The position numbers and the translations under genes were made by a program. Below are positions 8,836-47,559 of a DNA stretch of 64,000 nucleotides, piece after piece. A model generated the notes under the pieces. That model was given only the letters and a program-made list of their open reading frames with translations. It searched no databases and was not told the origin of the DNA. The DNA is from Macrostomum lignano (lineage: Eukaryota). The stretch covers positions 198,648-262,647 of the forward strand of contig NIVC01001018.1 in assembly GCA_002269645.1 (NCBI GenBank). The letters are read 5' to 3'. Each line of letters opens with the position of its first letter. Positions within the stretch are counted from its first letter, which is position 1.

Positions 8836-10113
8836 GATTCAGTTTTCAATAGATGTAGGGAATAAATTGGCACAAATATGAAAAAAGATTAAAGTTTTAT
8901 TATGGGTAGGCCTATTTAGTTTCAAATCTATTATTATTGCATCAATATTTATAAATATGATTGATTAGGCCTAAACATGATAATTAAATACAACCATAGT
9001 TATTAGTATTATTAATTTGCTAATTCATGGTTCAAAGAAATTGAAATTGATAGGCCTATAATAGAGATTCAATGTTTTGGCCATCTTGGTCTTAAGTTAC
9101 ACCCTTTCAAGTTTCAACCCACAAACTTTTTAACTTCAACTAGCCTTAGGAAATATGCCATAATAAAAATCTTAGTATTTCTGTTGAATTTGAAAATTCA
9201 AATTCAAACTTAAAATTCAAACTTCAAACTTAAATTCTAATTCAAGTTTAAAATGCAAACCTGCAACACTGGTGCAACACCTGGTCTTGGACCTGGTTCT
9301 GTCATCAACACCTAAACCTGGCCATTGAAAGAAGCAGCAGCAGCCACCCAATGCGAAACCTAATGCAATGGAGTGCTAACTTGCTCTTTCTCTAAAACAT
9401 CTTGCACTTTGTTCAAGAAGCGATAAATGAGAATGATCAGGCGCAGAGGCCACAACTTGGCTCTTTCGGTCCATGAATCTTGAGCAACGTGATGACTGAT
9501 GAGCAAGAGAAAGAAGCAGGTAGCAAGTCCAAGTACGAAGAATACTTGAACGCCATCTTTGGGCAGTCTGTGACAGTTCGCAAAGACCTGGAGTGCCGAG
9601 ACCAAAGCCAAGGCAAGGCCAAGGGGACTTATTTAGGCCCTAATGTAAAATTTGGCAATAGTGCACAAATATAACCTATACCAAATCTCAATTTACTTAT
9701 CACATACCCTTTGTTCTAAAGTTTGGCATAGGCCGCATAGCATACGTTACATCAGATGTCATTCAGCGACTTGAAAAGATGAAAAATTGTGTTAAGAAGC
9801 ATAATTTAAAATTAAATAACACACGAAATTGAACATTATATGTGCAATGAGTATAACAATGCAAATACCATAGGGCTTTTAAAAAGATGCTCTAAGGTCA
9901 AAATAAGACAGAAGGAAATAATTTAAGAAGTTGTTTACATTTACTTTCTGAACTAAAATATTTTGAGGGTTTTGCTTAAAGATTGAACTCTACCGGGTGC
10001 ATTGACTTACTTTGACTTAGCTGCAGGGTGGTCCGTAGACACAGCGGGGAGGCGAGGGTCGCCCATTCCGCTAGCCCCTGAAGGCCCGCAGACAGGCAGA
10101 GGCGTGGGGCCGG

Positions 10114-13100
10114 TCAGGGTGGTCCGCCGGTCCGTCCTGCAGCGTGATCTTCCGTTGGGAAGAAACTGGCTCGTCTAGTCGCCCGAAGGAACTGGATGAG
10201 CCGTGGGATGCTGTCGGGCTGGCAGACCTCGTCAATGGACGGGTTCGGCCCGAGGTAGCGTAGCCGGTCTCTGTTAAAGAAAGGGCAGTGACAGACAAAG
10301 TGCTGAGCATCTTCATTGTCGCACTCGCAAAAGGGGCAAATTTCGCTCTCGAGGTCGCCTCGGAGGAAGCAGTGCCTGGCGAGGTAGCCATGGCCGGTAA
10401 GGGTCATGACAAGGGCTCGAATATCCTTCCGATTCTGGTTCAGAAGGATGTTTCTGAGCCTGTGAGACGGGCAAGGAACCGCGGCACGAGATTGCCGGCA
10501 GTTTTGGGTGCCCGCCCATCTGTCCCTGTGGAGGGAGTCAGCCCAGTCGTCGATCTGACGATTGATGACTGTCAAGGGCATAGGGACCAGGGGGGCAGGG
10601 CCGAAGAAAGAGCCAGAGCCGCCCCTATTGGCGAGGGTGTCTGCCAGCTCGTTCCCCGGAAACCCTGCGTGCCCTGGGATCCACTTCAGCCTGACAGTAT
10701 TGCTTCTGGCCAGGAGGTTGAGCTGCCGGGCGCAGTCGGCGACTGTCCGGGAGATCGTTGTGGTGTGGCAAAGGGCCTGTAAGGCCGCTTGGCTGTCAGA
10801 GTGGATGACAATAGTCTTTCCTCTCGTAACCTTGGCGTTCAGCTCTGCAGCGCAAGAGCTGATGGCAAGGACTTCGTTCTGGAAGACTGTGGAGAGTCTA
10901 CCAGTGTGCTGGGCATGCGTGGCAATTACGCGGCCGTTGATGATGATGCAGACCCCAAAGCCGGCGCGACCGTCTTTGATGGATCCGTCCGTGTAGCAAT
11001 GGACCTCCTGGAAATTCCAGTGGTCATTGGCAGCATCCCTAGAGGGGATGGTGACCTTGTAGCGCTGAAAGAGGTTGAGAGTGCGGGGTTCGCCGTCAGA
11101 TAGGACGTGGAGCCCGCCGCTGTCTCTCAAGTCCTTGAGGCAGAGGTCAGCGTGGGGCAGAAGCTTGCGCTTAGCCATGGCCCTATGGGGCTGGATTCGA
11201 ATGCCAGCGTCAGCTAGACGGCGGGCAGTCTTAGCCGCTTCCCTGCGGACAAAGATGTCCAGCGGAGGAATGTTGAGGAAGGCGTTGAGGCCATCGAAGG
11301 GAGCAGACGGAGGGGCGCTCATGATCGTGCGACAAGCGCGCCCTTGCGCTCTCCTGAGAGCCTCTAGACAGGTCTTTATCTGCAGGGCGCTAGCCCAGAT
11401 CAGGCCGCCATACGAGATAGCGGGCCTAACCATTGCAGTGTAGATCCACCAGAGGCGCTTGGGGGTGAGCCCCCAGGTGGTGCCGACAGCCCTGCGCAAT
11501 TGCGCGAGGACTGCGAAGGCCTTTTTGGCTTTTGTTTGAACGTGGGGTGACCAGTTCAGCCTGTGGTCCAGGGTAATACCCAGACATTTAGTCTGCTTGC
11601 AGAAGGGGATTTCCCTTCCGTAAAGCGTGAGCGGCCGAATCTGCCACTTGGTCCTGCTGGTGAACATGATCGCTGCGGTCTTAGTCTCAGAGAGCCTTAA
11701 ACCACAGCGGTCCGCCCATTGCTCAGCAGCGTAGATGAAGTTCTGAAGAAGGTCCCTGAGGGTATCAGGGGACGGACCAGATGCCACCGCGGTGACATCG
11801 TCCGCATATCCAACTTTCAGAATGGGGTCAGGCCGAACAACCCGGAGGAGCTCATCGATGACCATATTCCAGAGAACTGGAGACAGCACCCCACCTTGCG
11901 GGCTACCTTTGCAGACGGGGACCGTCCTCTGGTAGCCCAGCAGACTGGCGGTGGCCGTGCGATGGCTGATCATGTACATGATCCATCTGGTGAGATGTGA
12001 GTGCGTTAGCCTCTCACAAAGAGCTCTTCGGAACGCCTCAAAGAGGACGTTATCGAAGGCGCCAATGATATCCAGGAAGATCCCCAGAGCAAAGCCATTA
12101 CCAAGCACGGCCTTCTCGAGTTTATCGACCAGGACGTGCAGCGCGCTTTCAGTGGAGCGACCCGCCCGAAAAGCGTGCTGGTTCTCGCTGAGAGGTTTGT
12201 TCTTCAGCTCAACAGAGAGAAGGCGCCAAAGCACCAGTCTCTCCATCAGCTTGACCAGGGAGGAGGTCAAGCTGATCGGTCTGAAGGATTTGATAGAATG
12301 GTAGTCCGAGCGGCCTGGCTTAGGGATAAAGATCACCTTTGCCTCGGTCCAAGCCTGTGGGACATAACCAAGCGTGATGCATGCCCGAAGAAGGCTGCAA
12401 AGTTTGCGCAGGAAGCCTGGGCATTTAACCGCCTCTCTTAGAAGGGCCGGTACAATGCCGTCGGGTCCTGGGGCTTTGAAAGGCTTGAAGGAATTTGCCG
12501 CTCTCACAATGCGGTCCTCCGTGATGATAGAGGCAGCCAGCGCGTGACCTCCCTCCGAGTGATCCGGAGTGGTCTGGTTAGCTGGCTCGTTGGGGAAAAA
12601 CGCAGTGAGCATTACATCAAGCGTTTCCCCTGGGTTGTCCGTGGACGTACCGTCGGTGCGTTTGACCGAGGAGAGCTTAGACATTTTGTCCAGCGTGAGC
12701 GCTTTCACAACTCTGGAGGTGGGGCGTGAGCCCTCTAGCTCCTCACAGTATTGTCGCCATTTTTGAGCCTTTGCATTCCTAACCTTCCTTTTAAACTCAT
12801 GAATTGCTTCATGATAGGCGGTTTGGTCTGCAGGGCTCTTAGTTTTAGTTGCTCTGCGGTGGAGTCTCTTAGCCCTGCGACGGAGGTTGCCGAGCTCGGG
12901 ATTCCACCACGGCGCTGATTTTTTCCCTTTATAGGCTTTTAAAGGGCAGGACGCCTCAAAGGCGGCGGTTAGCGTCTCTGTCAAAACAGTCGCGCACTCA
13001 TCCGCCTCTCGGCACGACGTGATCGTGGATGGTTGGCCAGGAGACCGATGGAATTCCTTCAGGGCGAGCCCGAAGGTTTCCCAATCCGTATTTCTGGCGT

Positions 13101-13818
13101 TCCGTCTCCACGTAACACGAGTTGCGCTACGCGCGGCCATTAGGTTGAAGGAGATGAACTTGTGATCCGAGAGTGAGGACACTGGAAGCACCCGCCACGC
13201 TCCAATACTCTGGTAGAGTCTGGGCGTTGCGAGCGTAGCGTCGATCACCTCCGACCACCGTCCGTTGTCAAAGGTAGGGGTGGACCCAGAGTTGCAGAAC
13301 TCGAGGGTCGTAGAGGCAACGTAGGCTAGGAGGTCTTCGCCTCTCTGATTAATGCCAGTGCTGCCCCAGTGAGTGTGGTGGGCGTTGATGTCGCCGGCAA
13401 CCATGAGCTCGTAGTTTTTGGCAGAGCAGAGCTCTACCAGCGTAGCGAGGGCTCTGGGGACGACCGCAGCATCGCCTGGTAGGTAAACCGAGGCAATGAG
13501 GGTGGTCTTCCCAGGAAGAAGGTCCTCGGATTGGATGACGCAGATGTCCCTGTTGGACAGGTCCGATCTGAGCCACGCACTGAGCGTTTTGCTCGCAAAG
13601 ATGCAAGCTCTGGGAGGCTGGTTGGCCTCGCGAGGGTAAGTATAAAAACAATTGTAGCCAGCAGGGGCGTTTTGAGGCTTACCTCTGAGAGTCCAGGGTT
13701 CCTGGACGAGGATGAGCCCCGGCTTGTCGAGCTCGGCGTAACGCATAAGGTTGACCGAGGCTGCGACGCAGTGCTGCAGATTAATCTGCAGGCAATGGAT
13801 TCCTTGGTTGCTGATCAT
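10114..13818 (-). CDS. retrotransposon ORF2: APE endonuclease, reverse transcriptase, RNase H, C-terminal CCHC (1234 aa from ATG 13818)
   Basis: EN: QINLQH, LVQEP, GDINAHH, SDH. RT: GPDGI, FRPISLTS, FLDIIGAFD, PQGGVLSP, YADD. RNase H: YTDGS, SDSQAAL, WIPGHAG..GNELAD. CPFC..EDAQHFVCHC. Uninterrupted frame. Confidence 0.96.
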   Translation of the reverse strand: MISNQGIHCLQINLQHCVAASVNLMRYAELDKPGLILVQEPWTLRGKPQNAPAGYNCFYTYPREANQPPRACIFASKTLSAWLRSDLSNRDICVIQSEDLLPGKTTLIASVYLPGDAAVVPRALATLVELCSAKNYELMVAGDINAHHTHWGSTGINQRGEDLLAYVASTTLEFCNSGSTPTFDNGRWSEVIDATLATPRLYQSIGAWRVLPVSSLSDHKFISFNLMAARSATRVTWRRNARNTDWETFGLALKEFHRSPGQPSTITSCREADECATVLTETLTAAFEASCPLKAYKGKKSAPWWNPELGNLRRRAKRLHRRATKTKSPADQTAYHEAIHEFKRKVRNAKAQKWRQYCEELEGSRPTSRVVKALTLDKMSKLSSVKRTDGTSTDNPGETLDVMLTAFFPNEPANQTTPDHSEGGHALAASIITEDRIVRAANSFKPFKAPGPDGIVPALLREAVKCPGFLRKLCSLLRACITLGYVPQAWTEAKVIFIPKPGRSDYHSIKSFRPISLTSSLVKLMERLVLWRLLSVELKNKPLSENQHAFRAGRSTESALHVLVDKLEKAVLGNGFALGIFLDIIGAFDNVLFEAFRRALCERLTHSHLTRWIMYMISHRTATASLLGYQRTVPVCKGSPQGGVLSPVLWNMVIDELLRVVRPDPILKVGYADDVTAVASGPSPDTLRDLLQNFIYAAEQWADRCGLRLSETKTAAIMFTSRTKWQIRPLTLYGREIPFCKQTKCLGITLDHRLNWSPHVQTKAKKAFAVLAQLRRAVGTTWGLTPKRLWWIYTAMVRPAISYGGLIWASALQIKTCLEALRRAQGRACRTIMSAPPSAPFDGLNAFLNIPPLDIFVRREAAKTARRLADAGIRIQPHRAMAKRKLLPHADLCLKDLRDSGGLHVLSDGEPRTLNLFQRYKVTIPSRDAANDHWNFQEVHCYTDGSIKDGRAGFGVCIIINGRVIATHAQHTGRLSTVFQNEVLAISSCAAELNAKVTRGKTIVIHSDSQAALQALCHTTTISRTVADCARQLNLLARSNTVRLKWIPGHAGFPGNELADTLANRGGSGSFFGPAPLVPMPLTVINRQIDDWADSLHRDRWAGTQNCRQSRAAVPCPSHRLRNILLNQNRKDIRALVMTLTGHGYLARHCFLRGDLESEICPFCECDNEDAQHFVCHCPFFNRDRLRYLGPNPSIDEVCQPDSIPRLIQFLRATRRASFFPTEDHAAGRTGGPP

Positions 13819-13820
13819 TA

Positions 13821-15286
13821 TCACGCAGTTGGGGAATCGTTGAGCAGGTCATCCTCCTCCTTTTCAGTGGTGGGTGACCCGCAGACCTCCATGGGAGTTT
13901 CAGCGTCCTCAGCAGTTAGGGTGGCTGTGGAGTCCTCCGCGGACGTGAGCCCAGCGTGGACGTTACCGTCGCCTCCCCTGCGTGCTTCGGTGCTGTCACT
14001 GCCCGTCCCCTCTGCCTCGTCGGTCAGGTCGATGCGGGTGGCGCCAGCCTCCTGGTGAGTCACAGACTCGAACCAGTCGGTCGGAGCCTCCCCGCTTAGA
14101 GTCTGGCCTTCTGGCTGTTGGGGTGGAGCGCGAGAAGCGCGGGCCCGCTCACGATGCGCACGAAGGTTCTTGGCCTGGTCCAGCGCGCGCTGGATCAGGC
14201 CGGACCTCCGGGTGCTCCTGGCGGGTCTGCGATTGCGATTTCCGGTTTCAGCAGCGCGAACTGCCTTACCGGGCATAGGATCGGCCGTTTGCCTCGGCTT
14301 CTTTGCCGGAGGAGCCTGGGCCCCAGTTCCGGTTTCGGAAGCTTTGGCATTCTTGGCTTCATCAGCTTTCCGCTCCTCGCAACGGAGGATGGTCAGCTGA
14401 GTCAGACCAATATGAATTGTGGACTTAGGCGGCAAGCGCTTAGCCCAGTCATCAGAGAGCCCTAGGATCACCGTAGCCCCCTTCTCCTTGCGGGAAGTGG
14501 CGTGGTGTAGGAGCCCGTTGACCTCAAGGTCGGGGTGCAGCTTTAGCAATATTTGCCTAAGCTGATCTCCGGACTTAATGGCACTGCCGGCCGGGATCCA
14601 GACGCGAAAGCGCTGGGTCTTCTGTCGTTCGCCTTCGCTGGCGAAGACGAGCTTGCCGAGCTTCTTGGGCCAGTTCAGCTTTGGCAGAAGCTCGCGTAGA
14701 TTGCGGCTGCTCTCCTCCGAGCTGCACCAGATGAAGATGCAGCCGTCGGTCTTGGCAGACTTGACCACGCTCACAGGGCGGCCCGCCAGGAGCTGGTCGA
14801 TGAGCGCAGCATCGATGGTGCGCCAGGCACTGTCGAGCTCGTCGGCCGTGAGGTCCTGCTCTTCCCCGAAGACGATGACCGCCGGTTGGAGCTTGACCTT
14901 TGAGGCGTAGTTGGTGGCGGCGGTTCCCGAAGGCCCGGCCGCGCTTGTAGCAGATATACTGGGTGGCTCACCAGCGGGGGTTGTATCCTGGGGGGCAGGG
15001 GTTGCTGTGGTTCCTTTCGGCCAACAGCAGCCTCGCCCTCCCTAGGTTCCCCCTCCGCCGGTGGCCGGCCCGCAGTACCCCGTAGTCGCCGTCGCCGCTC
15101 GTTGCGGCGTTCGTTGCGGGTGCGTCGGGCTTCAGCGGAGGGCCCGGTTGCGCGTGCGGGCATGTCACCGGCCGAGCCGGCGGCAAGCCCATCTGCCCTC
15201 GGTGGGGCGGCGCTGGTGCCAGAGTCACCGGCCGGAGTTGCCGGGGCCCCGGCTTCAGCGGGGTTGAAAGAGGCGGATGACGCCAT
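13821..15286 (-). CDS. retrotransposon ORF1 (about 488 aa) split by one frameshift near 14990
   Basis: ATG 15286 frame (MASSASFNP...) joins the frame ending at 13821 (...NYASKVKLQPAVIVFGEE...SVVKSAK...DSPTA*) if one base is added, e.g. to the C6 run near 14990-14995. Confidence 0.7.
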
Positions 15287-15511: not shown

Positions 15512-15756
15512 AGCCCAGTCTGTCCAGCAGCCCTAGGGTCTGCCTTGAACACACGCGGGACGAGTACCCTGGGTCGACTTGTGAAACAGCGTGAGGGGGG
15601 GGGTCTGCGGCTGCCAGCGGCAAATAGCGGGTGCAGACCTCCCTCTCCAGCCTTGACCTGCTGAAGATAGGGGCAGGCGTGAAGCATCGCAGACCGTAGC
15701 CCATAGGCCTGGTCTGTCTCATACTTCACTGGCGTGCTGAATACACCTTCGCGTGC
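15512..15756 (-). ncRNA. HDV-like self-cleaving ribozyme candidate at the retrotransposon 5' end
   Basis: P1 GCACGCG (15756-15750) pairs with CGCGTGT (15557-15551), including G1-U wobble; L3 TACTCGT; P1.1 AC/GT; P4 hairpin; J4/2 CAGA with putative catalytic C at 15522; P2 CCCAG/CTGGG. Confidence 0.7.
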
Positions 15757-21724: not shown

Positions 21725-22370
21725 GGGAGGGTAGGGGTTGGGAGTGGGGCGGCTGGGAAACTGAGGTAAGGGTAGGGTGGGGAGAGTGAGGTGGCTGTGA
21801 AACTGATGAGGGTTGTTTAGGGGTTGGGGGAATGAGGTGGCTGGGAAGCTGAAGGGTTGTTTAGGGGTTGGGAGAGTGAGGTGGCTGTGAAACTGATGAG
21901 GGTTGTTTAGGGGTTGGGGGAATGAGGTGGCTGGGAAGCTGAGGGTTGTTTAGGGGTTGGGGGAGTGAGTTGGCTGGGAAGCTGAGGGTTGTTTAGGGGT
22001 TGGGGAGTGAGGTGGCTGGGAAGCTGAGGGTTGTTTAGGGGTTGGGGGAGTGAGGTGGCTGGGAAGCTGAGGGTTGTTTAGGGGTTGGGGGAGTGAGGTG
22101 GCTGGGAAGCTGAAGGGTTGTTTAGGGGTTGGGGAGTGAGGTGGCTGGGAAGCTGAGGGTTGTTTAGGGGTTGGGGAGTGAGGTGGCTGGGAAGCTGAGG
22201 GTTGTTTAGGGGTTGGGGAGTGAGGTGGCTGGGAAGCTGAGGGTTGTTTAGAGGTTGGGGGAGTGAGGTGGCTGTGAAGCTGAGGGTTGTTTAGAGGTTG
22301 GGGGAGTGAGGTGGCTGTGAAGCTGAGGGTTGTTTAGGGGTTGGGGGAGTGAGGTGGCTTGGAAGCTGAA
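21725..22370. repeat. 42-43-bp G-rich minisatellite
   Basis: About 14 units of gaggtggctgggaagctgagggttgtttaggggttgggggagt. Confidence 0.92.
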
Positions 22371-22565: not shown

Positions 22566-24851
22566 TTAAGAAACGTGCATCGAACTTCCGGTCACGAAAC
22601 CTTTCGGTCCGTGGTTCCGCGTGTAGCAGCCGCGGCAAAACACTTGGCCCTTGTGCTCGGACTCGCCGCCCGGTTCCAGCGGCTTGGAGCAGTCCTCGCA
22701 CTTGAAGCAGGCCCGGTGAAACACCCGTCCAGTGGCCTGGAGGCGCTCGTTGAAATACACCGAGCCGGAGCAGCGGGAGCACTTCTCTCCGCCGCCGCCG
22801 TACTTGACGGCGCTTGGCGAAGGTCTGGCCGTGGCGACATTTTCAACGTGGTTCCTGACCAGTGCGAGATTGAAAATAAATAAGTTGGATCAGTCAGTCA
22901 GTCAGTCAGTCAGTCAGTCAGTCAGTCAGTCAGTCAGTCAGTCAGTCAGTCAGTCAGTCAGTCAGTCAGTCAGTCAGTCAGTCAGTCAGTCAGTCAGTCA
23001 GTCAGTCAGTCAGTCAGTCAGTCAGTCAGTCAGTCAGTCAGTCAGTCAGTCAGTCAGTCAGTCAGTCAGTCAGTCAGTCAGTCAGTCAGTCAGTCAGTCA
23101 GTCAGTCAGTCAGTCAGTCAGTCAGTCAGTCAGTCAGTCAGTCAGTCAGTCAGTCAGTCAGTCAGTCAGTCAGTCAGTCAGTCAGTCAGTCAGTCAGTCA
23201 GTCAGTCAGTCAGTCAGTCAGTCAGTCAGTCAGTCAGTCAGTCAGTCAGTCAGTCAGTCAGTCAGTCAGTCAGTCAGTCAGTCAGTCAGTCAGTCAGTCA
23301 GTCAGTCAGTCAGTCAGTCAGTCAGTCAGTCAGTCAGTCAGTCAGTCAGTCAGTCAGTCAGTCAGTCAGTCAGTCAGTCAGTCAGTCAGTCAGTCAGTCA
23401 GTCAGTCAGTCAGTCAGTCAGTCAGTCAGTATTTGTTCAGCTCAGCACAGGAAATATTTGTTCAAAGAAAATGTGTTATTTGAGAGAAATTTGTCACGTG
23501 CCGTGGTCGGCACAAGGACTTCTAGACTTCTAGAAGTCCTTGGGTCGGCAGGGTGGCTTCTCAGAGAAAGCCAATGGAATGAGAAATCTCTCAGGTTTCC
23601 GCCAAAGCAAGCAAGTGTTGCTTGTGTGTCACAATTAACACTCATGGCGTTTGTCCCGCGAGGCTTGTTCTCTTTGCCCAACGCGAATAAAATTAACAAT
23701 GTGACCGCATTGAGTCATGAGGTACACATTTGGAGAGAGAATCAAAAAGATAGACGGAGAAAGACTTGCTGCCAGTTTGTCTTTAGCAAAGTAGTATTTA
23801 AGTAAACAAGAAGCAAGGCTCTGCATATTGGCATTGCCAGTGTCTGAGGAACTCGACCTGTTGTGCAATTTTAGCAGCTGAATGCAAGGAGAAGGCAGGA
23901 AGTTCGTGTTTCACTTGCTATATGACGAATTGGAGCCTTTACATGTATGCCAAGCTATATTGCAATATATTAGCACAGGAAATCAAATGCCTCAAATTCC
24001 ATTATACATGCTTAGTGAATAATTCAACCAAATTCATTTATCTCCGCAACTGCTCACTTTTCTAAGTCATTTATTTTCGATGCAAAAAATATTTTATAGA
24101 AAATTTAAGAGGTCGAATTGAATCAGGTACGCAAATTGAAAAACGAAACATTCGGTTTGATGAAATCGAATTGTAGAACTAGAAAGTGCAAATTATTTTA
24201 TGGGCGTGTGTTGTTTTAGTTTGACTGCTGAACCTTTCCTGTCACTTTTAAGTCTCAAGCTTTAATCACTTACTTTTGAACCGAAAAGCTGAAATAATAT
24301 TTGATCAGTTCCGAATACATGTAAAAACGAAATGCACGAAGTTAATAAAAATGATTAAACGATTATAGTTGGTTTCTAAGGCCGTGATTTAAAGAGAACT
24401 ATGCACTCACGGCTGCCCCTCTGATTGCAGTCCGGCGGCTCCGCCAGCAAAGCCGTATCCTTTAGGACCGAAGTTCTTAGCGTAGCAGGCCCGGCAGTAA
24501 ATCCTGTCCTCGTGGTCGTTCACCGTCGATGAGTCAAGCAGCTTATTGCACAGGCCTAATAAAGTATAAGATTTAATCCTCACAGTCTTTCAGAGATATA
24601 AAATTAAGAATCGCTTCATTTGATATTTCCTGATCTCGCGACTTTTAAGTAGTAAATATGCAATCTCTGCTACAATTAAATCGTGAGCATAAACTTGTTT
24701 TTTAATCCAAAAAGGGAAATGCTATAGAAATTTACTTACAGCATTTCAGACAAAATTTGTGGTACGAATTCCTAAGACATTTCACTTCCTCCGCAAAGTA
24801 CACTTTCTTCTTGCAGGCTGGGCATGTAGGTGAGCCACCAAATGTAGGCAT
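22566..24851 (-). CDS. cysteine/glycine-rich two-LIM protein (CSRP/muscle LIM family); exons 24851-24740, 24555-24411, 22854-22566; 181 aa
   Basis: MPTFGGSPTCPACKKKVYFAEEV..HKFCLKC | LCNKLLDSSTVNDHEDRIYCRACYAKNFGPKGYGF | GGGGEKCSRCSGSVYFNE..HRACFKCEDC..FCRGCYTRNHGPKGF. GT-AG junction phases are consistent; AATAAA at 22495-22490. Confidence 0.93.
22890..23430. repeat. (GTCA)n microsatellite, about 135 units, in CSRP-like intron 2
   Basis: Perfect tetranucleotide run. Confidence 0.98.
23513..23542. mobile_element. 30-bp transposon remnant (16+14 bp of the termini of the 26350-27400 element) with 8-bp TSD
   Basis: caaggacttctagact+tctagaagtccttg flanked by ggtcggca at 23505-23512 and 23543-23550. 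Confidence 0.85.
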
Positions 24852-36811: not shown

Positions 36812-38740
36812 ATGGACAGCGGACAATTTACCGAAGACATCAGTCGCCAAATGCGCATACCAGATAGGCTGGGCCCAATGGCAGACAGGGATTATGAAGC
36901 CCTCCACACTGACACTGATGGCGGCTTCAGCCGTGCCGCACAGCAACAGCCCGCGTTTCTCGGCGCTCTCGATTTGATGAGCGTGCCGGATCGACTGCTA
37001 GCTACTTTGTGCCCGCGCCAGCCGACGATTTTAACAATACTTATCGTAGTTACTATAGCGACGCCAGGGCTGACGCGGGCGGCGGGGCTAAGCTTGCGGA
37101 CCCGGCTCTGACTATTGATACACCGCCAGCCACCATCACTCTGGACAAGGTGCGGTATCCGGACTTCCCAGCCTCCGATGAGAGCAGCTTGTGAGTTCAA
37201 TGCTCGCATGATTGCTAATTGACTGCCTGCTGAATTTAAACCTCTTATGGGTTTTTTTCCAAGATAAATAGAATCGCCCCACCCCCATCTCAATAATCGC
37301 CCCACACCCATCTCAATAATCGCCTCACACCCATCTCAATAATCGCCCCACACCCATCTCAAGAATGGCCCCATCCCCATCTCAAGAATGGCCCCATCCC
37401 CATCTCAAGAATGGCCCCATCCCCATCTCAAGAATGGCCCCATCCCCATCTCAAGAATGGCCCCATCCCAATCTCAAGAATCGCCCCACACCCATCTCAA
37501 GAATCGCCCCACACCCATCTCAAGAATGGCCTCATCCCCATCTCAAGAATGGCCCCATCCCCTCCTCAAGAATGGCCCCATCCCCTCCTCAAGAATGGCC
37601 CCATCCCCTCCTCAAGAATGGCCCCATCCCCTCCTCAAGAATGGCCCCATCCCCATCTCAAGAAGTGCCCCATCCCCATCTCAAGAATGGCCTCATCCCT
37701 CCTCAAGAAGTGCCCCATCCCCTCCTCAAGAAGTGCCCCATCCCCTCCTCAAGAAGTGCCCCATCCCCTCCTCAAGAAGTGCCCCATCCCCTCCTCAAGA
37801 AGTTCCCCATCCCCTCCTCAAGAATGGCCCCATCCCCTCCTCAAGAATGGCCCCATCCCCTCCTCAAGAATGGCCCCATCCCCATCTCAAGAATGGCCTC
37901 ATCCCTCCTCAAGAATGGCCTCATCCCTCCTCAAGAAGTGCCCCATCCCCTCCTCAAGAAGTGCCCCATCCCCTCCTCAAGAAGTGCCCCATCCCCTCCT
38001 CAAGAATGGCCCCATCCCCTCCTCAAGAATGGCCCCATCCCCTCCTCAAGAAGTGCCCCATCCCCTCCTCAAGAATGGCCCCATCCCCATCTCAAGAAGT
38101 GCCCCATCCCCATCTCAAGAATGGCCTCATCCCTCCTCAAGAAGTGCCCCATCCCCTCCTCAAGAAGTGCCCCATCCCCTCCTCAAGAAGTGCCCCATCC
38201 CAATCTCAAGAATCGCCCCACACCCATCTCAAGAATGGCCCCATCCTAATCTCAAGAATCGCCCCACACCCATCTCAAGAATGGCCCCATCCCCATCTCA
38301 AGAATGGCCCCATCCCCTCCTCAAGAAGTGCCCCATCCCCTCCTCAAGAAGTGCCCCATCCCCTCCTCAAGAATGGCTCCATCCCCTCCTCAAGAAGTGC
38401 CCCATCCCCATCTCAAAAATCGCCCCATCCCCATTTTAATAATCAATCCATCGCCATCTAAAGAATGGCCGCAGGCAAGAAGAAGCGCCGCAGGCTGAGC
38501 AGCCGGCAGCGTCCGGCCTCGCCGCCCAGCAACAGCATCTACGAGTTGGACGATGACGCAACAGTGGCGCCGACAGCTCTGGCGGCCTCCAAGCTGGCCA
38601 AACTGCAGCGTCGCGTTGAAGCGCTGGAGTCCGAGAGCCGGAAGCGGCGTCAACTGGAGATGGCGCTGTACTCGGCTTTGGGAACTTACCTGCTGTTGAA
38701 ATTGGCCAGTTGGCTAGTGGCCAGCGGTGCAAATCGATAA
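36812..38740 (+). CDS. MFF: mitochondrial fission factor-like; exons 36812-37190 (one frameshift near 37005) and 38464-38740; about 218 aa
   Basis: FTEDISRQMRIPDRL and LMSVPDRLL repeats, LTIDTPPATITL, coiled coil KLQRRVEALESESRKRRQLEMALYS plus C-terminal TM; TT|gtgagt ... ctaaag|A junction is in phase. Confidence 0.82.
37270..38440. repeat. 23-bp minisatellite filling the MFF intron
   Basis: About 50 units of ctcaagaatggccccatccccat and variants. Confidence 0.95.
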
Positions 38741-39861: not shown

Positions 39862-41546
39862 ATGTTCGGCAAGAAGAAATCAGCCCCAGGAGCGAAGCCA
39901 AAGCTGGACGATAACGCCAAGGCTGCCGTCATGGCCACCGCCGGATTTGACGGCTCGGGTGGTGGAGGCAAAACTGGGGCTGGCGCCGGGGCCAGCGCAT
40001 CCGGTACGCAGGCTGCGGCGGCTGGCGGTGCGCAACTGCTGAACCAGGCTCTGGAGCGGTACAGCGTGCGAATGAAGCGATTTTGTAAGGCCGGCGCTAT
40101 CTTGGCCGGAATTGGCATCGTTATCCTGCTGGTTGGAGCTCTGCTGGTCCACTTCTTTAAGGGCCACCTGTCGTCTAATACGTGGAAAAGGTTTGCGGTG
40201 GAGAGGGTTAGGGTGTGGGCTGGCGGGTGGGTTAGGGTGTTAGCTGGCGGGTGGGTTAGGGTGTGGGCTGGCGGGTGGGTTAGGGTGTGGGCTGGCGGGT
40301 GGGTTAGGGTGTTAGCTGGCGGGTGGGTTAGGGTGTTAGCTAACGGGTGGGTTAGGGTGTGGGCTGGCGGGTGGGTTAGGGTGTTAGCTGGCGGGTGGGT
40401 TAGGATGTTAGCTGGCGGGTGGGTTAGGGTGTTAGCTGGCGGGTAGGTTAGGGTGTTAGCTGGCGGGTGGGTTAGGGTGTTAGCTGGCGGGTGGGTTAGG
40501 GTGTTAGCTGCCGGGTGGGTTAGGGTGTTAGCTGGCGGGTGGGTTAGGGTGTTAGCTGCCGGGTAGGTTAGGGTGTTAGCTGGCGGGTGGGTTAGGGTGT
40601 TAGCTGGCGGGTGGGTTAGGGTGTTAGCTGGCGGGTGGGTTAGGGTGTTAGCTGGCGGGTGGGTTAGGGTGTTATCTGGCGGGTGGGTTAGGGTGTTAGC
40701 TGGCGGGTGGGTTAGGATGTTAGCTGGCGGGTGGGTTAGGGTGTTAGCTGGCGGGTGGGTTAGGGTGTTAGCTGGCGGGTGGGTTAGGATGTTAGCTGGC
40801 GGGTGGGTTAGGGTGTTAGCTGGCGGGTGGGTTAGGGTGTTAGCTGGCGGGTGGGTTAGGGTGTTAGCTGGCGGGTGGGTTAGGGTGTTAGCTGGCGGGT
40901 GGGTTAGGGTGTTAGCTGGCGGGTGGGTTAGGGTGTTAGCTGGCGGGTGGGTTAGGGTGTTATCTGGCGGGTGGGTTAGGGTGTTAGCTGGCGGGTGGGT
41001 TAGGGTGTTGGCTGGCGGGTAGGTTAGGGTGTTGGCTGGCGGGTAGGTTAGGGTGTGAGCTGGCGGGCGGGTTAGCGTTTGTTTAAGGTGTGGTAGTTAA
41101 AATTCACATGCACACCCCAATGTCTCTGTTTGCAGAATTCCGGGCATTTTCGGCATCGTATTCCTGCTGCTCAGCCTGCTGATGCTGGGCATTGCCATCC
41201 TGCTGCTTGTGTGCGCTTATCACCTGATGAAGAATCGGGACAGAGACGTGAGTGAATATTTAATATTGTATAGGCTTAATCGGGTTGAGTGAATGCGTGT
41301 AAATTTGCACTCACCCTACTAACAGTAGTAGCAGCAGTAGTAATTCTCTAAACTGTGCGCAAATTTCTTCAGTCGGCTTCGCCTTGCGTGAACCTACAAC
41401 CGCCGCAGCCGGGCAGCCTACCGGACACCGCCTATCCCAAACAGGAGGTCCCCAAACAGAAAGGCGCCGGTGACGCTTCGGCTCCAGACGACGAATCGGC
41501 GCCGCTTCGTGCTACTGAAGAGGCGGAAGCGGAGGCGACTGCGTAG
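39862..41546 (+). CDS. uncharacterised two-TM membrane protein; exons 39862-40190, 41136-41247, 41373-41546; 204 aa
   Basis: GT-AG junctions in phase; hydrophobic segments AGAILAGIGIVILLVGALLV and IFGIVFLLLSLLMLGIAILLLVC; AATAAA at 41603. Confidence 0.85.
40203..41075. repeat. 24-bp G-rich minisatellite in intron 1
   Basis: About 36 units of gggttagggtgttagctggcgggt. Confidence 0.95.
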
Positions 41547-44149: not shown

Positions 44150-45065
44150 TTTAGCGGTTAAGCCCACCCCTACTTCCTACCCTGCTGTCGCTGAACCGCT
44201 GCTGTGTTGGCTGTTGGGGTGGGTGCGGTTTATCGATTATCTGGCCGGCCCTCAGCCCCACCCCACTCCTAGGCCTTCTTCCTGGCCTGCTGTGTTGGGG
44301 TGGGTGCGGTTTGTCGATTATCTGGCTGGCTCTCAGAGCCCCAACCCCTCCTAGGCCTCCTTCCTGCCCTGCTGTGTTGGGGTGGGTGCGGTTTGTCGAT
44401 TATCTGGCTGGCTCTCAGAGCCCCAACCCCTCCTAGGCCTCCTTCCTGCCCTGCTGTGTTGGGGTGGGTGCGTTTTATCGATTATCTGGCCGGCCCTCAG
44501 CCCCACCCCACTCCTAGGCCTTCTTCCTGCCCTGCTGTGTTGGGGTGGGTGCGGTTTGTCGATTATCTGGCTGGCTCTCAGAGCCCCAACCCCTCCTAGG
44601 CCTCCTTCCTGCCCTGCTGTGTTGGGGTGGGTGCGGTTTATCGATTATCTGGCCGGCCCTCAGCCCCACCCCACTCCTAGGCCTTCTTCCTGCCCTGCTG
44701 TGTTGGGGTGGGTGCGGTTTGTCGATTATCTGGCTGGCTCTCAGAGCCCCAACCCCTCCTAGGCCTCCTTCCTGCCCTGCTGTGTTGGGGTGGGTGCGTT
44801 TTATCGATTATCTGGCCGGCCCTCAGCCCCACCCCACTCCTAGGCCTTCTTCCTGCCCTGCTGTGTTGGGGTGGGTGCGGTTTGTCGATTATCTGGCTGG
44901 CTCTCAGAGCCCCAACCCCTCCTAGGCCTCCTTCCTGCCCCGCTGTGTTGGGGTGGGTGCGGTTTATCGATTATCTGGCCGGCCCTCAGCCCCACCCCAC
45001 TCCTAGGCCTCCTTCCTACCCTGCTGTCACTGAACCGCTGCTGTGTTGGGGTGGGTGCGGTTTAT
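44150..45065. repeat. 163-bp tandem repeat made of two related subunits of about 82 bp
   Basis: ORF track repeats at offsets 44382, 44545, 44708, 44871. Confidence 0.92.
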
Positions 45066-45294: not shown

Positions 45295-46813
45295 TTAGGC
45301 TGACGGCACCTTGGCGTACTGGAAGTCCGATCCTGTCATGTAGTCGGCAATGTCTAGTGCTACAACGCAGCTCTCGCGAACCAGAATCTCCGGGTCAGTC
45401 AGGTATTGCCGGAGCAGTTCGACGCAGCGCGGCGTGCCAATGGCGCCGAGAGCTTCAGCTGCCTCGTGACGTACCATGCCGTGCTCTGATTGGTCAGTGA
45501 GGCGGCCAATCAGGGCCTCCATAGAGCTGGGATGGCCAAGCTGGCCCAGTACGAAGGCGACCTCGTGTCGTAGCAGAGCGCTCTCCGGGCAGGTCAGGGC
45601 GGCGCTAAGGCCGGCCACCGCCTCTTCGGCTGACTGGCCGTCTGGCGGCCCAGCGAGAGCAACGTTGCGCAGGCCGAACATCGCACAGTAGCGATCGTAC
45701 AGGGGCGCGGATGGGTCCGACTGCAGCGGCGGAGTGGGATGGAACTGATATAAGATGGATCTGGTGTAGGGTTGTAGGGTGGCTAAAGTGTTAAGGGATC
45801 AGGCTTGGGATGAGTTGGCTGTGGGATGGATCAGGTGTGGCATGGACCAGGTGTGGCATGAATCAGGTGTGGGATGGATCAGGTGTGGGATGGACCAGGT
45901 GTGGCATGAACCAGGTGTGGGATGGATCAGGTGTGGGATGGATCAGGTGTGGGAAAGACCAGGTGTGGCATGAATTAGGTGTGGCATGAATCAGGTGTGG
46001 CATGAATCAGGTGTGGGATGGATCAGGTGTGGGATGGATCAGGTGTGGCATGGACCAGGTGTGGCATGAATCAGGTGTGGCATGGATCAGGTGTGGCATG
46101 AATCAGGTGTGGCATGAATCAGGTGTGGGATGGATCAGGTGTGGGATGGACTAGGTGTGGCATGGATCAGGTGTGGCATGAATCAGGTGTGGGATGGATC
46201 AGGTGTGGAATACTCCCCAAGCCAGAGGTCAGAATCCGGCGCCTACAAAGCCCAGAGCGCGAGAATTGTCACTCACCAGCCTCTGGGCCATGGCGGCCAC
46301 AGACTCTGAGGCTGAGGCAGGCGGCGTGGGATCAACAGAAGCGCAGGCGGCCACGGCGGCCGACACTTCCTCGGGTCGGGCGGTTTTCAGCCAGGCAATC
46401 CGCCGGACAGCCAGTTGGCAGGTCTCGGCCAGCTCCTGCTCTGGGGAGTCGGTCAGCTCGGCCACCGCGGCCAGCGCCTCCTCGGTGCCGATTGCGCCGA
46501 GCGCCTCGGCGGCCTCGTGCCGGACAATGACCGGCTGAGCGGGGTCGGCCAGCACGCGGCGCAGGATTGCTGCAGAGGCCGGGTCGCCTTTCTGACCGAG
46601 TACGTAGGCCATCTCGTGCTTCAACAGTGCGGACTTGTCGGTGAACAGGGCGGCGCCAATCAAGTCGACGGCGGCCGGCTCTCTGGCGTGGCGCAAGCCG
46701 AACAGGCAGCGGTACTTTTCTACTAGGGGAGTCCGCTCGCCAGCCAGCTGCTCGCCCCAGCTGCGCAGAGTGGCCTCATCCACTGGCTTGATGTCTACAG
46801 CTGCTGCGCTCAT
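45295..46813 (-). CDS. DOHH: deoxyhypusine hydroxylase; exons 46813-46277 and 45720-45295; 320 aa
   Basis: Four HE motifs: LLKHEMAYVLGQ, IVRHEAAEALGAI, LLRHEVAFVLGQL, MVRHEAAEALGAI; RL|gtgagt ... ctgcag|SDPSAPLYDRYCAMFGLRN. Confidence 0.96.
45790..46210. repeat. 16-bp minisatellite in the DOHH intron
   Basis: caggtgtgg(c/g)atg(g/a)a(t/c) units. Confidence 0.92.
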
Positions 46814-46959
46814 GACGTCGCTAAGCTGCAAGGAGAAGTATGTGACAAGCTTTTAACACTTCAAGCGTGTACCAGCTGGCATCCTGGTTTTCTATCTGAC
46901 ATTTTGAATTTCAAACGAGATTCTGACGCTTAAGAAAGCCAGCATTAATTGGTTACTTG

Positions 46960-47400
46960 CCAATTCAGCCAATCGGAGGCAGACACGTCATGAAATAGAG
47001 TCTAGCCTATTGACAATCTATCCAATCCGCGACAGACACGTCATTAAATAGTCTAGCTAACCTAGCCAATCAGATACAGACACGTCATTAAATAGTCTAG
47101 CTAATCTAGCCAATCCGAGACAGACACGTCATTAAATAGTCTAGCTAACCTAGCCAATCAGATACAGACACGTCATTAAATAGTCTAGCTAATCTAGCCA
47201 ATCCGAGACAGACACGTCATTAAATAGTCTAGCTAACCTAGCCAATCAGATACATACACGTCATTAAATAGTCTAGCTAACCTAGCCAATCAGATACATA
47301 CACGTCATTAAATAGTCTAGCTAACCTAGCCAATCAGATACAGACACGTCATTAAATAGTCTAGCTAATCTAGCCAATCCGAGACAGACATGTTATAAAA
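46960..47400. promoter_or_regulatory. 44-bp tandem array of CCAAT-N9-ACACGTCA units upstream of DOHH
   Basis: About 10 units, e.g. agccaatcagatacagacacgtcattaaatagtctagct. The repeat is certain; its regulatory role is inferred. Confidence 0.6.
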
Positions 47401-47559
47401 TAGAGTCCAACCAAGCCAAACAGAGACAGACCCAATTTACGCTCGTATTGTAAATTATATGAAGATTAAAACAAAGCTATCACTATCATACGCAGACACA
47501 TTGATGTGCAGGTTATACTAGCATGGTATCTAAATTATAGCTTAATAACCATAGACTCC

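Follow-up and report, generated by a model that had tools for sequence, protein, structure and literature searches.

A predicted HDV-like self-cleaving ribozyme at the 5′ end of an I-like non-LTR retrotransposon of Macrostomum lignano

The first 243 nucleotides of a non-LTR retrotransposon of Macrostomum lignano probably encode an HDV-like self-cleaving ribozyme that has been passed down in a clade of I-like elements with RNase H, a reading to which we assign a probability of about 0.8. From sequence comparison, a genuine HDV-like 5′ ribozyme is well supported by fold and descent, and the odds that the copy described here is still active are roughly even. The copy lies in a 64,000-nucleotide stretch of contig NIVC01001018.1, the whole of which is called the window below. 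All HDV-like parts could be located in HDV strand order within element nt 1-243 (window 15756-15514, minus strand).

The element and its boundaries

The element is a non-LTR retrotransposon of 5,755 bp that lies on the minus strand (15756-10002) and makes up the whole of a GC-rich block. A perfect 13-bp TSD, ATGCACCCGGTAG in the minus-strand reading, brackets it at 15769-15757 upstream and 10001-9989 downstream, both copies being read directly as the same sequence. The upstream copy is followed by G15756 where the empty site would have A, which fixes the 5′ boundary of the element to the base. As the first-pass annotation had proposed, G15756 is both the first base inside the TSD and nucleotide 1 of P1, and the TSD boundary and the fold agree to the base.

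The APE/RT/RNase H content, a separate ORF1, the TSD and a tandem-repeat tail class the element as an I-like, RNase H-bearing non-LTR retrotransposon. ORF2 (10114-13824, minus strand) is intact and encodes 1236 aa with AP-endonuclease, reverse transcriptase, RNase H and a C-terminal CCHC, matching Pfam PF03372/PF14529, PF00078 and PF00075. Its best named matches are M. lignano gene models; it is 98% identical to one M. lignano protein across 43% of the query and 78% identical to a second. Exact look-ups of the ORF2 protein and of the 78%-identical one found no entry for either. Given the perfect TSD and the intact ORF2, the insertion is young.

ORF1 (13821-15286, minus strand) starts with an ATG at 15286, 228 nt downstream of the folded 5′ end, and is split by one frameshift. 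The frame changes within element nt ~716-800 (window 14957-15037), the ATG frame being open until element nt 984 and the downstream frame, which is the homologous one, being open from nt 716 onward. In the closest relative, L001, the homologue of ORF1 is one unbroken 525-aa ORF. With ORF1 frameshifted, the window copy is probably not autonomous, and blastn and tblastn found no second copy of the element in the 64-kb window. At 13821-13824 (minus strand) the stop of ORF1 and the start listed for ORF2 share the letters GUGA, the first ATG of ORF2 being codon 3; this overlap could reflect termination-reinitiation or another non-standard start of ORF2.

The 3′ UTR (10002-10113, minus strand) ends in TAAGTCAA-AG-TAAGTCAA without poly-A. 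Members of the clade end in short tandem repeats, likewise without poly-A: two copies of TAAGTCAA in the window (10002-10030, minus strand), (TAAGG)n in the relatives L005 and L011, and (AAGAG)n in L014. In distant relatives a conserved 3′ UTR motif, GGGGATGCGCAYTGGGCC...GGCCTCAGCGC, precedes the tail repeats.

Elsewhere in the window minisatellite arrays are unusually abundant, their periods ranging from 16 to 163 bp and their copy numbers reaching ~50 (for example 2248-2682, 21732-22369, 37270-38432, 40205-41075, 44212-45027, 45820-46208 and 47018-47431), and most other GC-rich blocks and long ORFs of the window are such arrays and not genes. A (TCAG)135 microsatellite with 100% matches (22890-23430) creates the 357-aa ORF at 22732-23805, which is spurious and matches Pfam repeats weakly. 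A 200-aa ORF at 46229-46831 (minus strand) matches the HEAT-repeat Pfam PF13646 (E=3e-16) and may be a host gene exon.

The 5′ fold and its competitors

Window positions are obtained here as 15757 minus the element position, and all parts of the fold lie on the minus strand. The nested double pseudoknot order of HDV is present, P1-(J1/2)-P2-P3-L3-P3′-P1′-P1.1′-P4-J4/2-P2′. The 5′ strand of P1, GCACGCG (15750-15756, nt 1-7), pairs with CGCGUGU (15551-15557, nt 200-206) through a G1-U206 wobble and six further pairs, and its G15756, element base 1, is the predicted first nucleotide after cleavage. A J1/2 of 176 nt (15574-15749, nt 8-183) follows, structured and self-closing in MFE folds, and leads into P2, in which CCCAG (15569-15573, nt 184-188) pairs with CUGGG (15514-15518, nt 239-243) at the 3′ end of the ribozyme. 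P3 consists of GG (15567-15568, nt 189-190) and CC (15558-15559, nt 198-199), closed by L3 UACUCGU (15560-15566, nt 191-197), whose 3′-side C and G stand at the HDV-conserved L3 positions. Its A15565 and C15564 form P1.1 with the GU at 15549-15550, giving the pairs A15565-U15549 and C15564-G15550 (A192-U208 and C193-G207). J1.1/4 and the P4 hairpin, UCAA-GGCAGACC-CUAG-GGCUGCU-GGA (15523-15548, nt 209-234; RNAfold -8.9 kcal/mol), pair as GGCAG(A)CC-CUAG-GGCUGCU, and J4/2 CAGA (15519-15522, nt 235-238) provides C15522 (C235) as the candidate catalytic cytosine. P1 with its wobble, P2, P3, L3, P4 and J4/2 CAGA had all been listed by the first-pass annotation and are all present, and the J1/2 that it had put at about 170 nt measures 176 nt.

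An alternative register is just as valid, with a P1 of 6 bp, a P3 of 3 bp (GGG 15567-15569 with CCC 15557-15559) and a P2 of 4 bp (CCCA-UGGG). The spacing from L3 to P1.1 is 9 nt rather than 10 in both the window and L001, which leaves either P1 7/P3 2 or P1 6/P3 3, and at the P2/P3 junction the window is 2 nt shorter than L001, which results in the 2-bp P3 or the 4-bp P2. Since L001 has the same 9 nt, the short P3/P1 stack is a lineage trait and no lesion of the window copy. P3 had initially been taken to be one pair short unless a C was missing; the 9-nt stack bears out the shortness, and it falls within the P1 range of 6-7 bp that is reported for R2 ribozymes (PMC3774820).

How often such a fit arises by chance was estimated by dinucleotide shuffling of the 5′-most 557 nt, P1 being anchored at base 1. 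An HDV-like match appeared in 25 of 3000 shuffles (0.8%) with a P3 of 3 bp and in 116 of 3000 (3.9%) with a P3 of 2-3 bp. The single-sequence fit alone is thus suggestive, interesting and non-conclusive, and because a chance match occurs in ~1-4% of shuffles for one sequence, the case depends on the relatives. A permissive descriptor run over 128 kb (both strands) found three further weak cores elsewhere, with ~0.8 expected from shuffles (0.4 per 64-kb strand). Very permissive descriptors were discarded (353 matches versus 257 in shuffles).

In an unconstrained, pseudoknot-free calculation the MFE of nt 1-243 (-97.0 kcal/mol) prefers a local hairpin at nt 198-243 (15514-15559, minus strand) that ties up P1′, P1.1, J4/2 and P2′, including the putative catalytic C. 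Forcing P1 and P3 gives -93.2 to -93.8 kcal/mol, 3-4 kcal/mol above the pseudoknot-free MFE, and P2 would contribute a further -4 to -7 kcal/mol to the forced fold. According to these models, the hairpin could be an inactive conformer that competes with the ribozyme fold. For L001, L005, L082 and L011 the pseudoknot-free MFE gives P1 back. A second GCACGC lies inside J1/2 at element nt 20-25 (15737-15732, minus strand) and could pair with P1′ through the same 6 bp; L082 also repeats its P1 5′ strand within J1/2 (GGGCGC, nt 772-777), and L001 has no such repeat. The duplicate strand could be due to chance or could serve a competing or regulatory pairing.

When J1/2 is folded alone, its MFE structure is a closed multi-branch domain in all five long-J1/2 lineages, with few unpaired bases beside P1 and P2. 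A ~51-nt hairpin at window 15729-15679 is conserved in L001, and RNAalifold finds 36 consensus pairs in the J1/2 of the window and L001, six of them compensatory. Peripheral 'P1.2' domains speed large HDV-like ribozymes by drawing P1 and P2 together in a 'pinch' (PMC4908430), and silkmoth R2 ribozymes require part of J1/2 (PMC3774820); the window J1/2, as modelled, matches both the pinch role and the silkmoth requirement. The partial sequence conservation of J1/2, its 51-nt hairpin and the second P1 strand in the window and L082 would also suit a regulatory or dual-function module, that is, an internal promoter or protein platform combined with a switch between the cleaving fold and the 198-243 hairpin. 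We regard such a module as quite unlikely; if it existed, it would amount to a promoter-plus-ribozyme system like that of L1Tc Pr77 in a metazoan LINE clade. A conserved 5′ module of ~70 nt, possibly a promoter, has been described in Nimb-clade LINEs, an RTE and mollusc SINEs (PMC4758252), and the 5′ module of the window may be the same or related.

Relatives, covariation and model searches

The sole usable close relative from the ORF2 search was L001, a Logan contig with an ORF2 61% identical to that of the window; P0002, P0006 and P0007 offered no usable 5′ sequence. Two ORF1 protein searches for close relatives were run, of which the first returned nothing beyond ORF1 of L001 and a single chimeric gene model from M. 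lignano, and the second was empty. The L001 contig starts exactly with the homologue of G1, and the 5′ UTRs of L001 and the window can be aligned over ~260 nt.

We placed the HDV pairs onto a MAFFT alignment of the window and L001 that had been built from sequence alone. All 14 scored pairs form in both sequences, none being broken, and five of them show double compensatory changes. From window to L001, positions 3 and 4 of P1 change from A-U to C-G and from C-G to U-A, one P2 pair changes from C-G to U-A, and both pairs of P1.1 covary, from A-U to C-G and from C-G to U-A. One other P1 pair changes from G-U to G-C. As a control, the 3′ partners were shifted by 1-3 columns, which gave 21-54% pairing and 0-1 double changes. 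The first-pass annotation had proposed an HDV-like double pseudoknot with its cleavage site at element base 1, a reading that the 14 of 14 pairs kept in L001 and their five compensatory changes back. At the level of sequence, these comparative data lift the fold well above chance. The alignment is ambiguous between P4 and P2′, where the window has GCUGCU-GGACAGA-CUGGG versus GCUGCU-CUGAG in L001, and for this reason C15522 as the catalytic base is a model.

An ORF2 profile scan of metagenome contigs returned 80 more distant loci at 28-39% identity. Four independent lineages, L005/L053, L014, L082 and L011, proved to have clean HDV-like motifs when a descriptor was applied to the regions upstream of ORF2; their ORF2 is 33-35% identical and their motif lies 1.68-1.87 kb upstream of the ORF2 match (1.93 kb from G1 to ORF2 in the window). 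With a descriptor taken from literature-conserved features, the regions upstream of ORF2 in relatives yielded six cores versus 0.2 in shuffles. L021, L019 and other 6-mer, GU-rich descriptor matches were dismissed as noise.

L005, which is the same locus as L053, has at 2130-2329 a P1 of G7/C7, L3 UCUACGU, P1.1 CU/AG, J4/2 CUGAU and a J1/2 of 135 nt. The L014 motif (575-759) combines P1 GGGGGG/CCCUCC, L3 GCCUCGU, P1.1 CC/GG and J4/2 CUAAAC with a J1/2 of 103 nt, and that of L082 (706-944) has P1 GGGCGCG/CGCGCCC, L3 UCCACGU, P1.1 CC/GG, J4/2 CGAAAU and a J1/2 of 150 nt. L011 (848-966) is compact, with P1 GGCCCUC/GAGGGCU including a G1-U, L3 UCCACGUU, P1.1 CC/GG, J4/2 CUAAAU and a J1/2 of just 9 nt.

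Several features recur across these lineages, the window and L001. P1.1 is Watson-Crick in all six, and the canonical CC/GG occurs together with J4/2 CUAAA/CGAAA in three of the distant lineages. It had been suggested earlier that a compensated AC/GU pair replaces the usual CC/GG in the window, and the covariation agrees: P1.1 is AC/GU in the window, CU/AG in L001 and L005, and CC/GG in L014, L082 and L011. The L3 pattern N-NN-N-CG-U is present in 6/6 lineages, the first base being U in five and G in L014, and so is a C at the equivalent place of J4/2 (CUAAA, CGAAA, CUGAU, CUGCU and CAGA), where the window-L001 alignment is ambiguous. P4 differs in length among the relatives. A table of the six lineages has double changes at 15 of 16 pairs and pairing in 98.9% of its cells, values that come from an alignment fitted to structure and are non-independent.

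As for the upstream boundaries of the relatives, the composition of the L005 flank shifts at G1 and the AT-rich flank of L014 stops at G1. No TSD could be established for the relatives, whose contigs end in the 3′ tail or which have a short TSD or none. Reading by eye, we noticed directly upstream of the L014 ribozyme, at 480-574, a putative decayed reverse-transcriptase motif from another retroelement (..VPQDWKLAK..IFKKGKK..); if it is real, L014 would be a nested insertion with its boundary at the predicted cleavage site. L005 and L014 also have a recognisable common J1/2 sequence, with a covarying closing stem (CCAUG/CAUGG versus CCGUGG/CCACGG).

Searches with curated models covered the Rfam families RF00094, RF01787, RF01788, RF02682, RF00622 and others, and the 176-nt J1/2 lies outside what these models permit. 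At gathering score, Rfam had no match in the window or in 20 related loci, and at E<=10 a 601-nt region and an 81-nt core region of the window gave spurious miRNA matches or none. The lineage with the compact J1/2, L011, produced sub-threshold matches to RF02682 (25.7 bits, where the gathering score is 44; E=0.006), RF01787 (E=0.074) and RF00094 (E=0.72). These three HDV matches are in register with G1, two starting right at G1 and one 2 nt upstream. Curated covariance models fully miss HDV-like ribozymes with a long J1/2.

We also built a covariance model, R1, from five relatives (pseudoknot-free core, N-padded, P4 truncated, 0.81 bits per position). Run over the 64-kb window with filters on or off, it missed the ribozyme site, which it scores at 0.8 bits. 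We take this failure to reflect a weak model and a divergent core and not to be a refutation, yet it is a genuine negative result. A DNA pattern derived from the conserved J1/2 hairpin gave chance bacterial matches only among genome contigs and none among viral contigs.

Mechanism, alternatives and known systems

In the mechanism we propose, which is the one accepted for dispersed LINEs of this kind, the element would be transcribed by read-through from upstream, or with any 5′ leader, and its 5′ 243 nt would fold co-transcriptionally to the nested double pseudoknot. P1 would stack on P1.1 and P4, and P2 on P3, with the far ends of P1 and P2 kept together by the self-closing 176-nt J1/2 domain. 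C15522 in J4/2 would then catalyse a presumably Mg2+-dependent scission 5′ of G15756, and the product, a 5′-OH RNA starting at element base 1, would become the template for reverse transcription, the upstream fragment ending in a 2′,3′-cyclic phosphate. The predicted cleavage site would coincide with the TSD boundary because the cDNA copies an RNA starting at element base 1. By analogy, the folded 5′ end may possibly assist ORF1 translation as well, a role also suggested for R2 and for L1Tc (review: PMC6765202).

The alternative that survives best is that the ancestral ribozyme was active and has decayed in the M. lignano family or in this copy, the G15756 end then stemming from an internal promoter or a master copy. 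We consider it unlikely. Decay would fit the position of the window core as an outlier to the relatives' model (0.8 bits), the loss of 2 nt from the P2/P3 junction as compared with L001, together with the altered J4/2, the hairpin that pseudoknot-free folding favours by 3-4 kcal/mol, and the frameshifted ORF1. However, the pairs of P1, P1.1, P2 and P3 are all intact and five have been compensated since the split from L001, which argues for continued selection on the fold; moreover, the perfect TSD and intact ORF2 mark a young insertion, and active R2 ribozymes tolerate a 6-bp P1, P3 mismatches and an absent P4 (PMC3774820).

It is very improbable that there is no ribozyme at all and that the structured 5′ UTR serves as an internal promoter or in translation, a flexible search having fitted HDV pairing to it by chance: the permissive descriptor, its chance rate of ~1-4% for one sequence, the silence of Rfam on the window and the three other weak cores in 128 kb against ~0.8 expected would allow it, but five compensatory changes, both long-range pseudoknot helices included, appear in a structure-blind alignment, the nested architecture, the L3 C/G and the J4/2 C recur at a homologous position in four more lineages, and one of these (L011) has Rfam HDV-family matches in register with G1.

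An HDV-like ribozyme inherited at the 5′ end of these elements would be a new example of the known 5′-ribozyme principle and not a new principle, apparently new for this flatworm lineage. The degree of novelty had been overstated earlier, as 5′-terminal HDV-like ribozymes and J1/2 regions of hundreds of nucleotides are documented in R2, R4/Dong, Baggins, RTE and L1Tc. The accompanying statement that 5′-end HDV-like ribozymes with a long J1/2 are known from R2 and other non-LTR clades is documented, and the supposition that this variant had gone undescribed in this lineage apparently holds: our literature search found no report linking Macrostomum lignano, retrotransposons and ribozymes, and none on HDV-like ribozymes in flatworm elements other than R2. 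The finding leaves the established view of RNA processing by such elements unchanged and extends 5′-terminal HDV-like ribozymes to I-like LINEs of a free-living flatworm and their relatives in environmental metagenomes. It offers a natural series for the tolerance of the core, in which P1.1 is CC/GG, CU/AG or AC/GU and the length of J1/2 varies between 9 and 177 nt, and for M. lignano, a model of regeneration and the germline, it predicts uncapped 5′-OH retrotransposon RNAs from read-through transcripts.

The window ribozyme resembles CPEB3 and HDV in its L3 pattern (UACUCGU in the window, UUCACGU in CPEB3 and UCCUCGC in antigenomic HDV), in the GU or GG after P1′, in the G1-U wobble and in a J4/2 starting with C. 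Unlike the window ribozyme, CPEB3 and HDV are compact, intronic or viral, and sit at no retrotransposon 5′ end.

At retrotransposon 5′ ends, HDV-like ribozymes are on record for R2, R4, Dong, Baggins, RTE and L1Tc (PMC3774820, PMC3185411, PMC6765202). The Pr77 ribozyme of L1Tc/ingi (L1TcRz), like that of the window, is HDV-like and occupies the first nucleotides of an RNase-H-bearing LINE; it cleaves at +1 and has a non-canonical P1.1 of a single pair, but unlike the window ribozyme it is compact, at 77 nt; it also serves as an internal promoter (PMC3185411). The Baggins1 (LOA clade) and RTE ribozymes belong, as does that of the window, to dispersed, non-site-specific APE LINEs, which are presumed to need read-through transcription and self-processing of the 5′ end (Ruminski et al. 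2011, cited in PMC6765202; PMC4908430). In drz-Agam-2-1 a structured J1/2 (P1.2) activates the core by joining P1 and P2 (PMC4908430). Compared with Baggins1 and RTE, the window element is apparently of a different clade and has no sequence similarity, and its J1/2 is larger (176 nt, multi-branched) and part-conserved between lineages.

A close likeness in architecture is found in R2 of Drosophila and of silkmoths and the honeybee, the latter two with a very long J1/2, where the ribozyme is again a 5′-terminal double pseudoknot with a P1 of 6-7 bp (PMC3774820). In active R2 ribozymes P1 has 6-7 bp, commonly 6, J1/2 ranges between 23 and more than 700 nt and P4 is variable, and the L3 C/G is conserved in HDV-like ribozymes (PMC3774820); the P1, J1/2 and P4 of the window are within this documented range. 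R2 and the window are alike in a J1/2 of hundreds of nucleotides, a variable P4, the L3 C/G, a catalytic C (a candidate in the window) and compensatory changes in P1, and the R2 J1/2 has a functionally needed sub-region (PMC3774820). Drosophila R2 is cleaved precisely where the element begins (PMC3774820), as is predicted for the window element. Unlike the window element, R2 is without AP endonuclease and RNase H, inserts in 28S rDNA only and is co-transcribed with rRNA, whereas the window element encodes APE-RT-RNase H in a two-ORF layout, occupies a non-rDNA site with a 13-bp TSD and builds its P1.1 from an A-U and a C-G pair.
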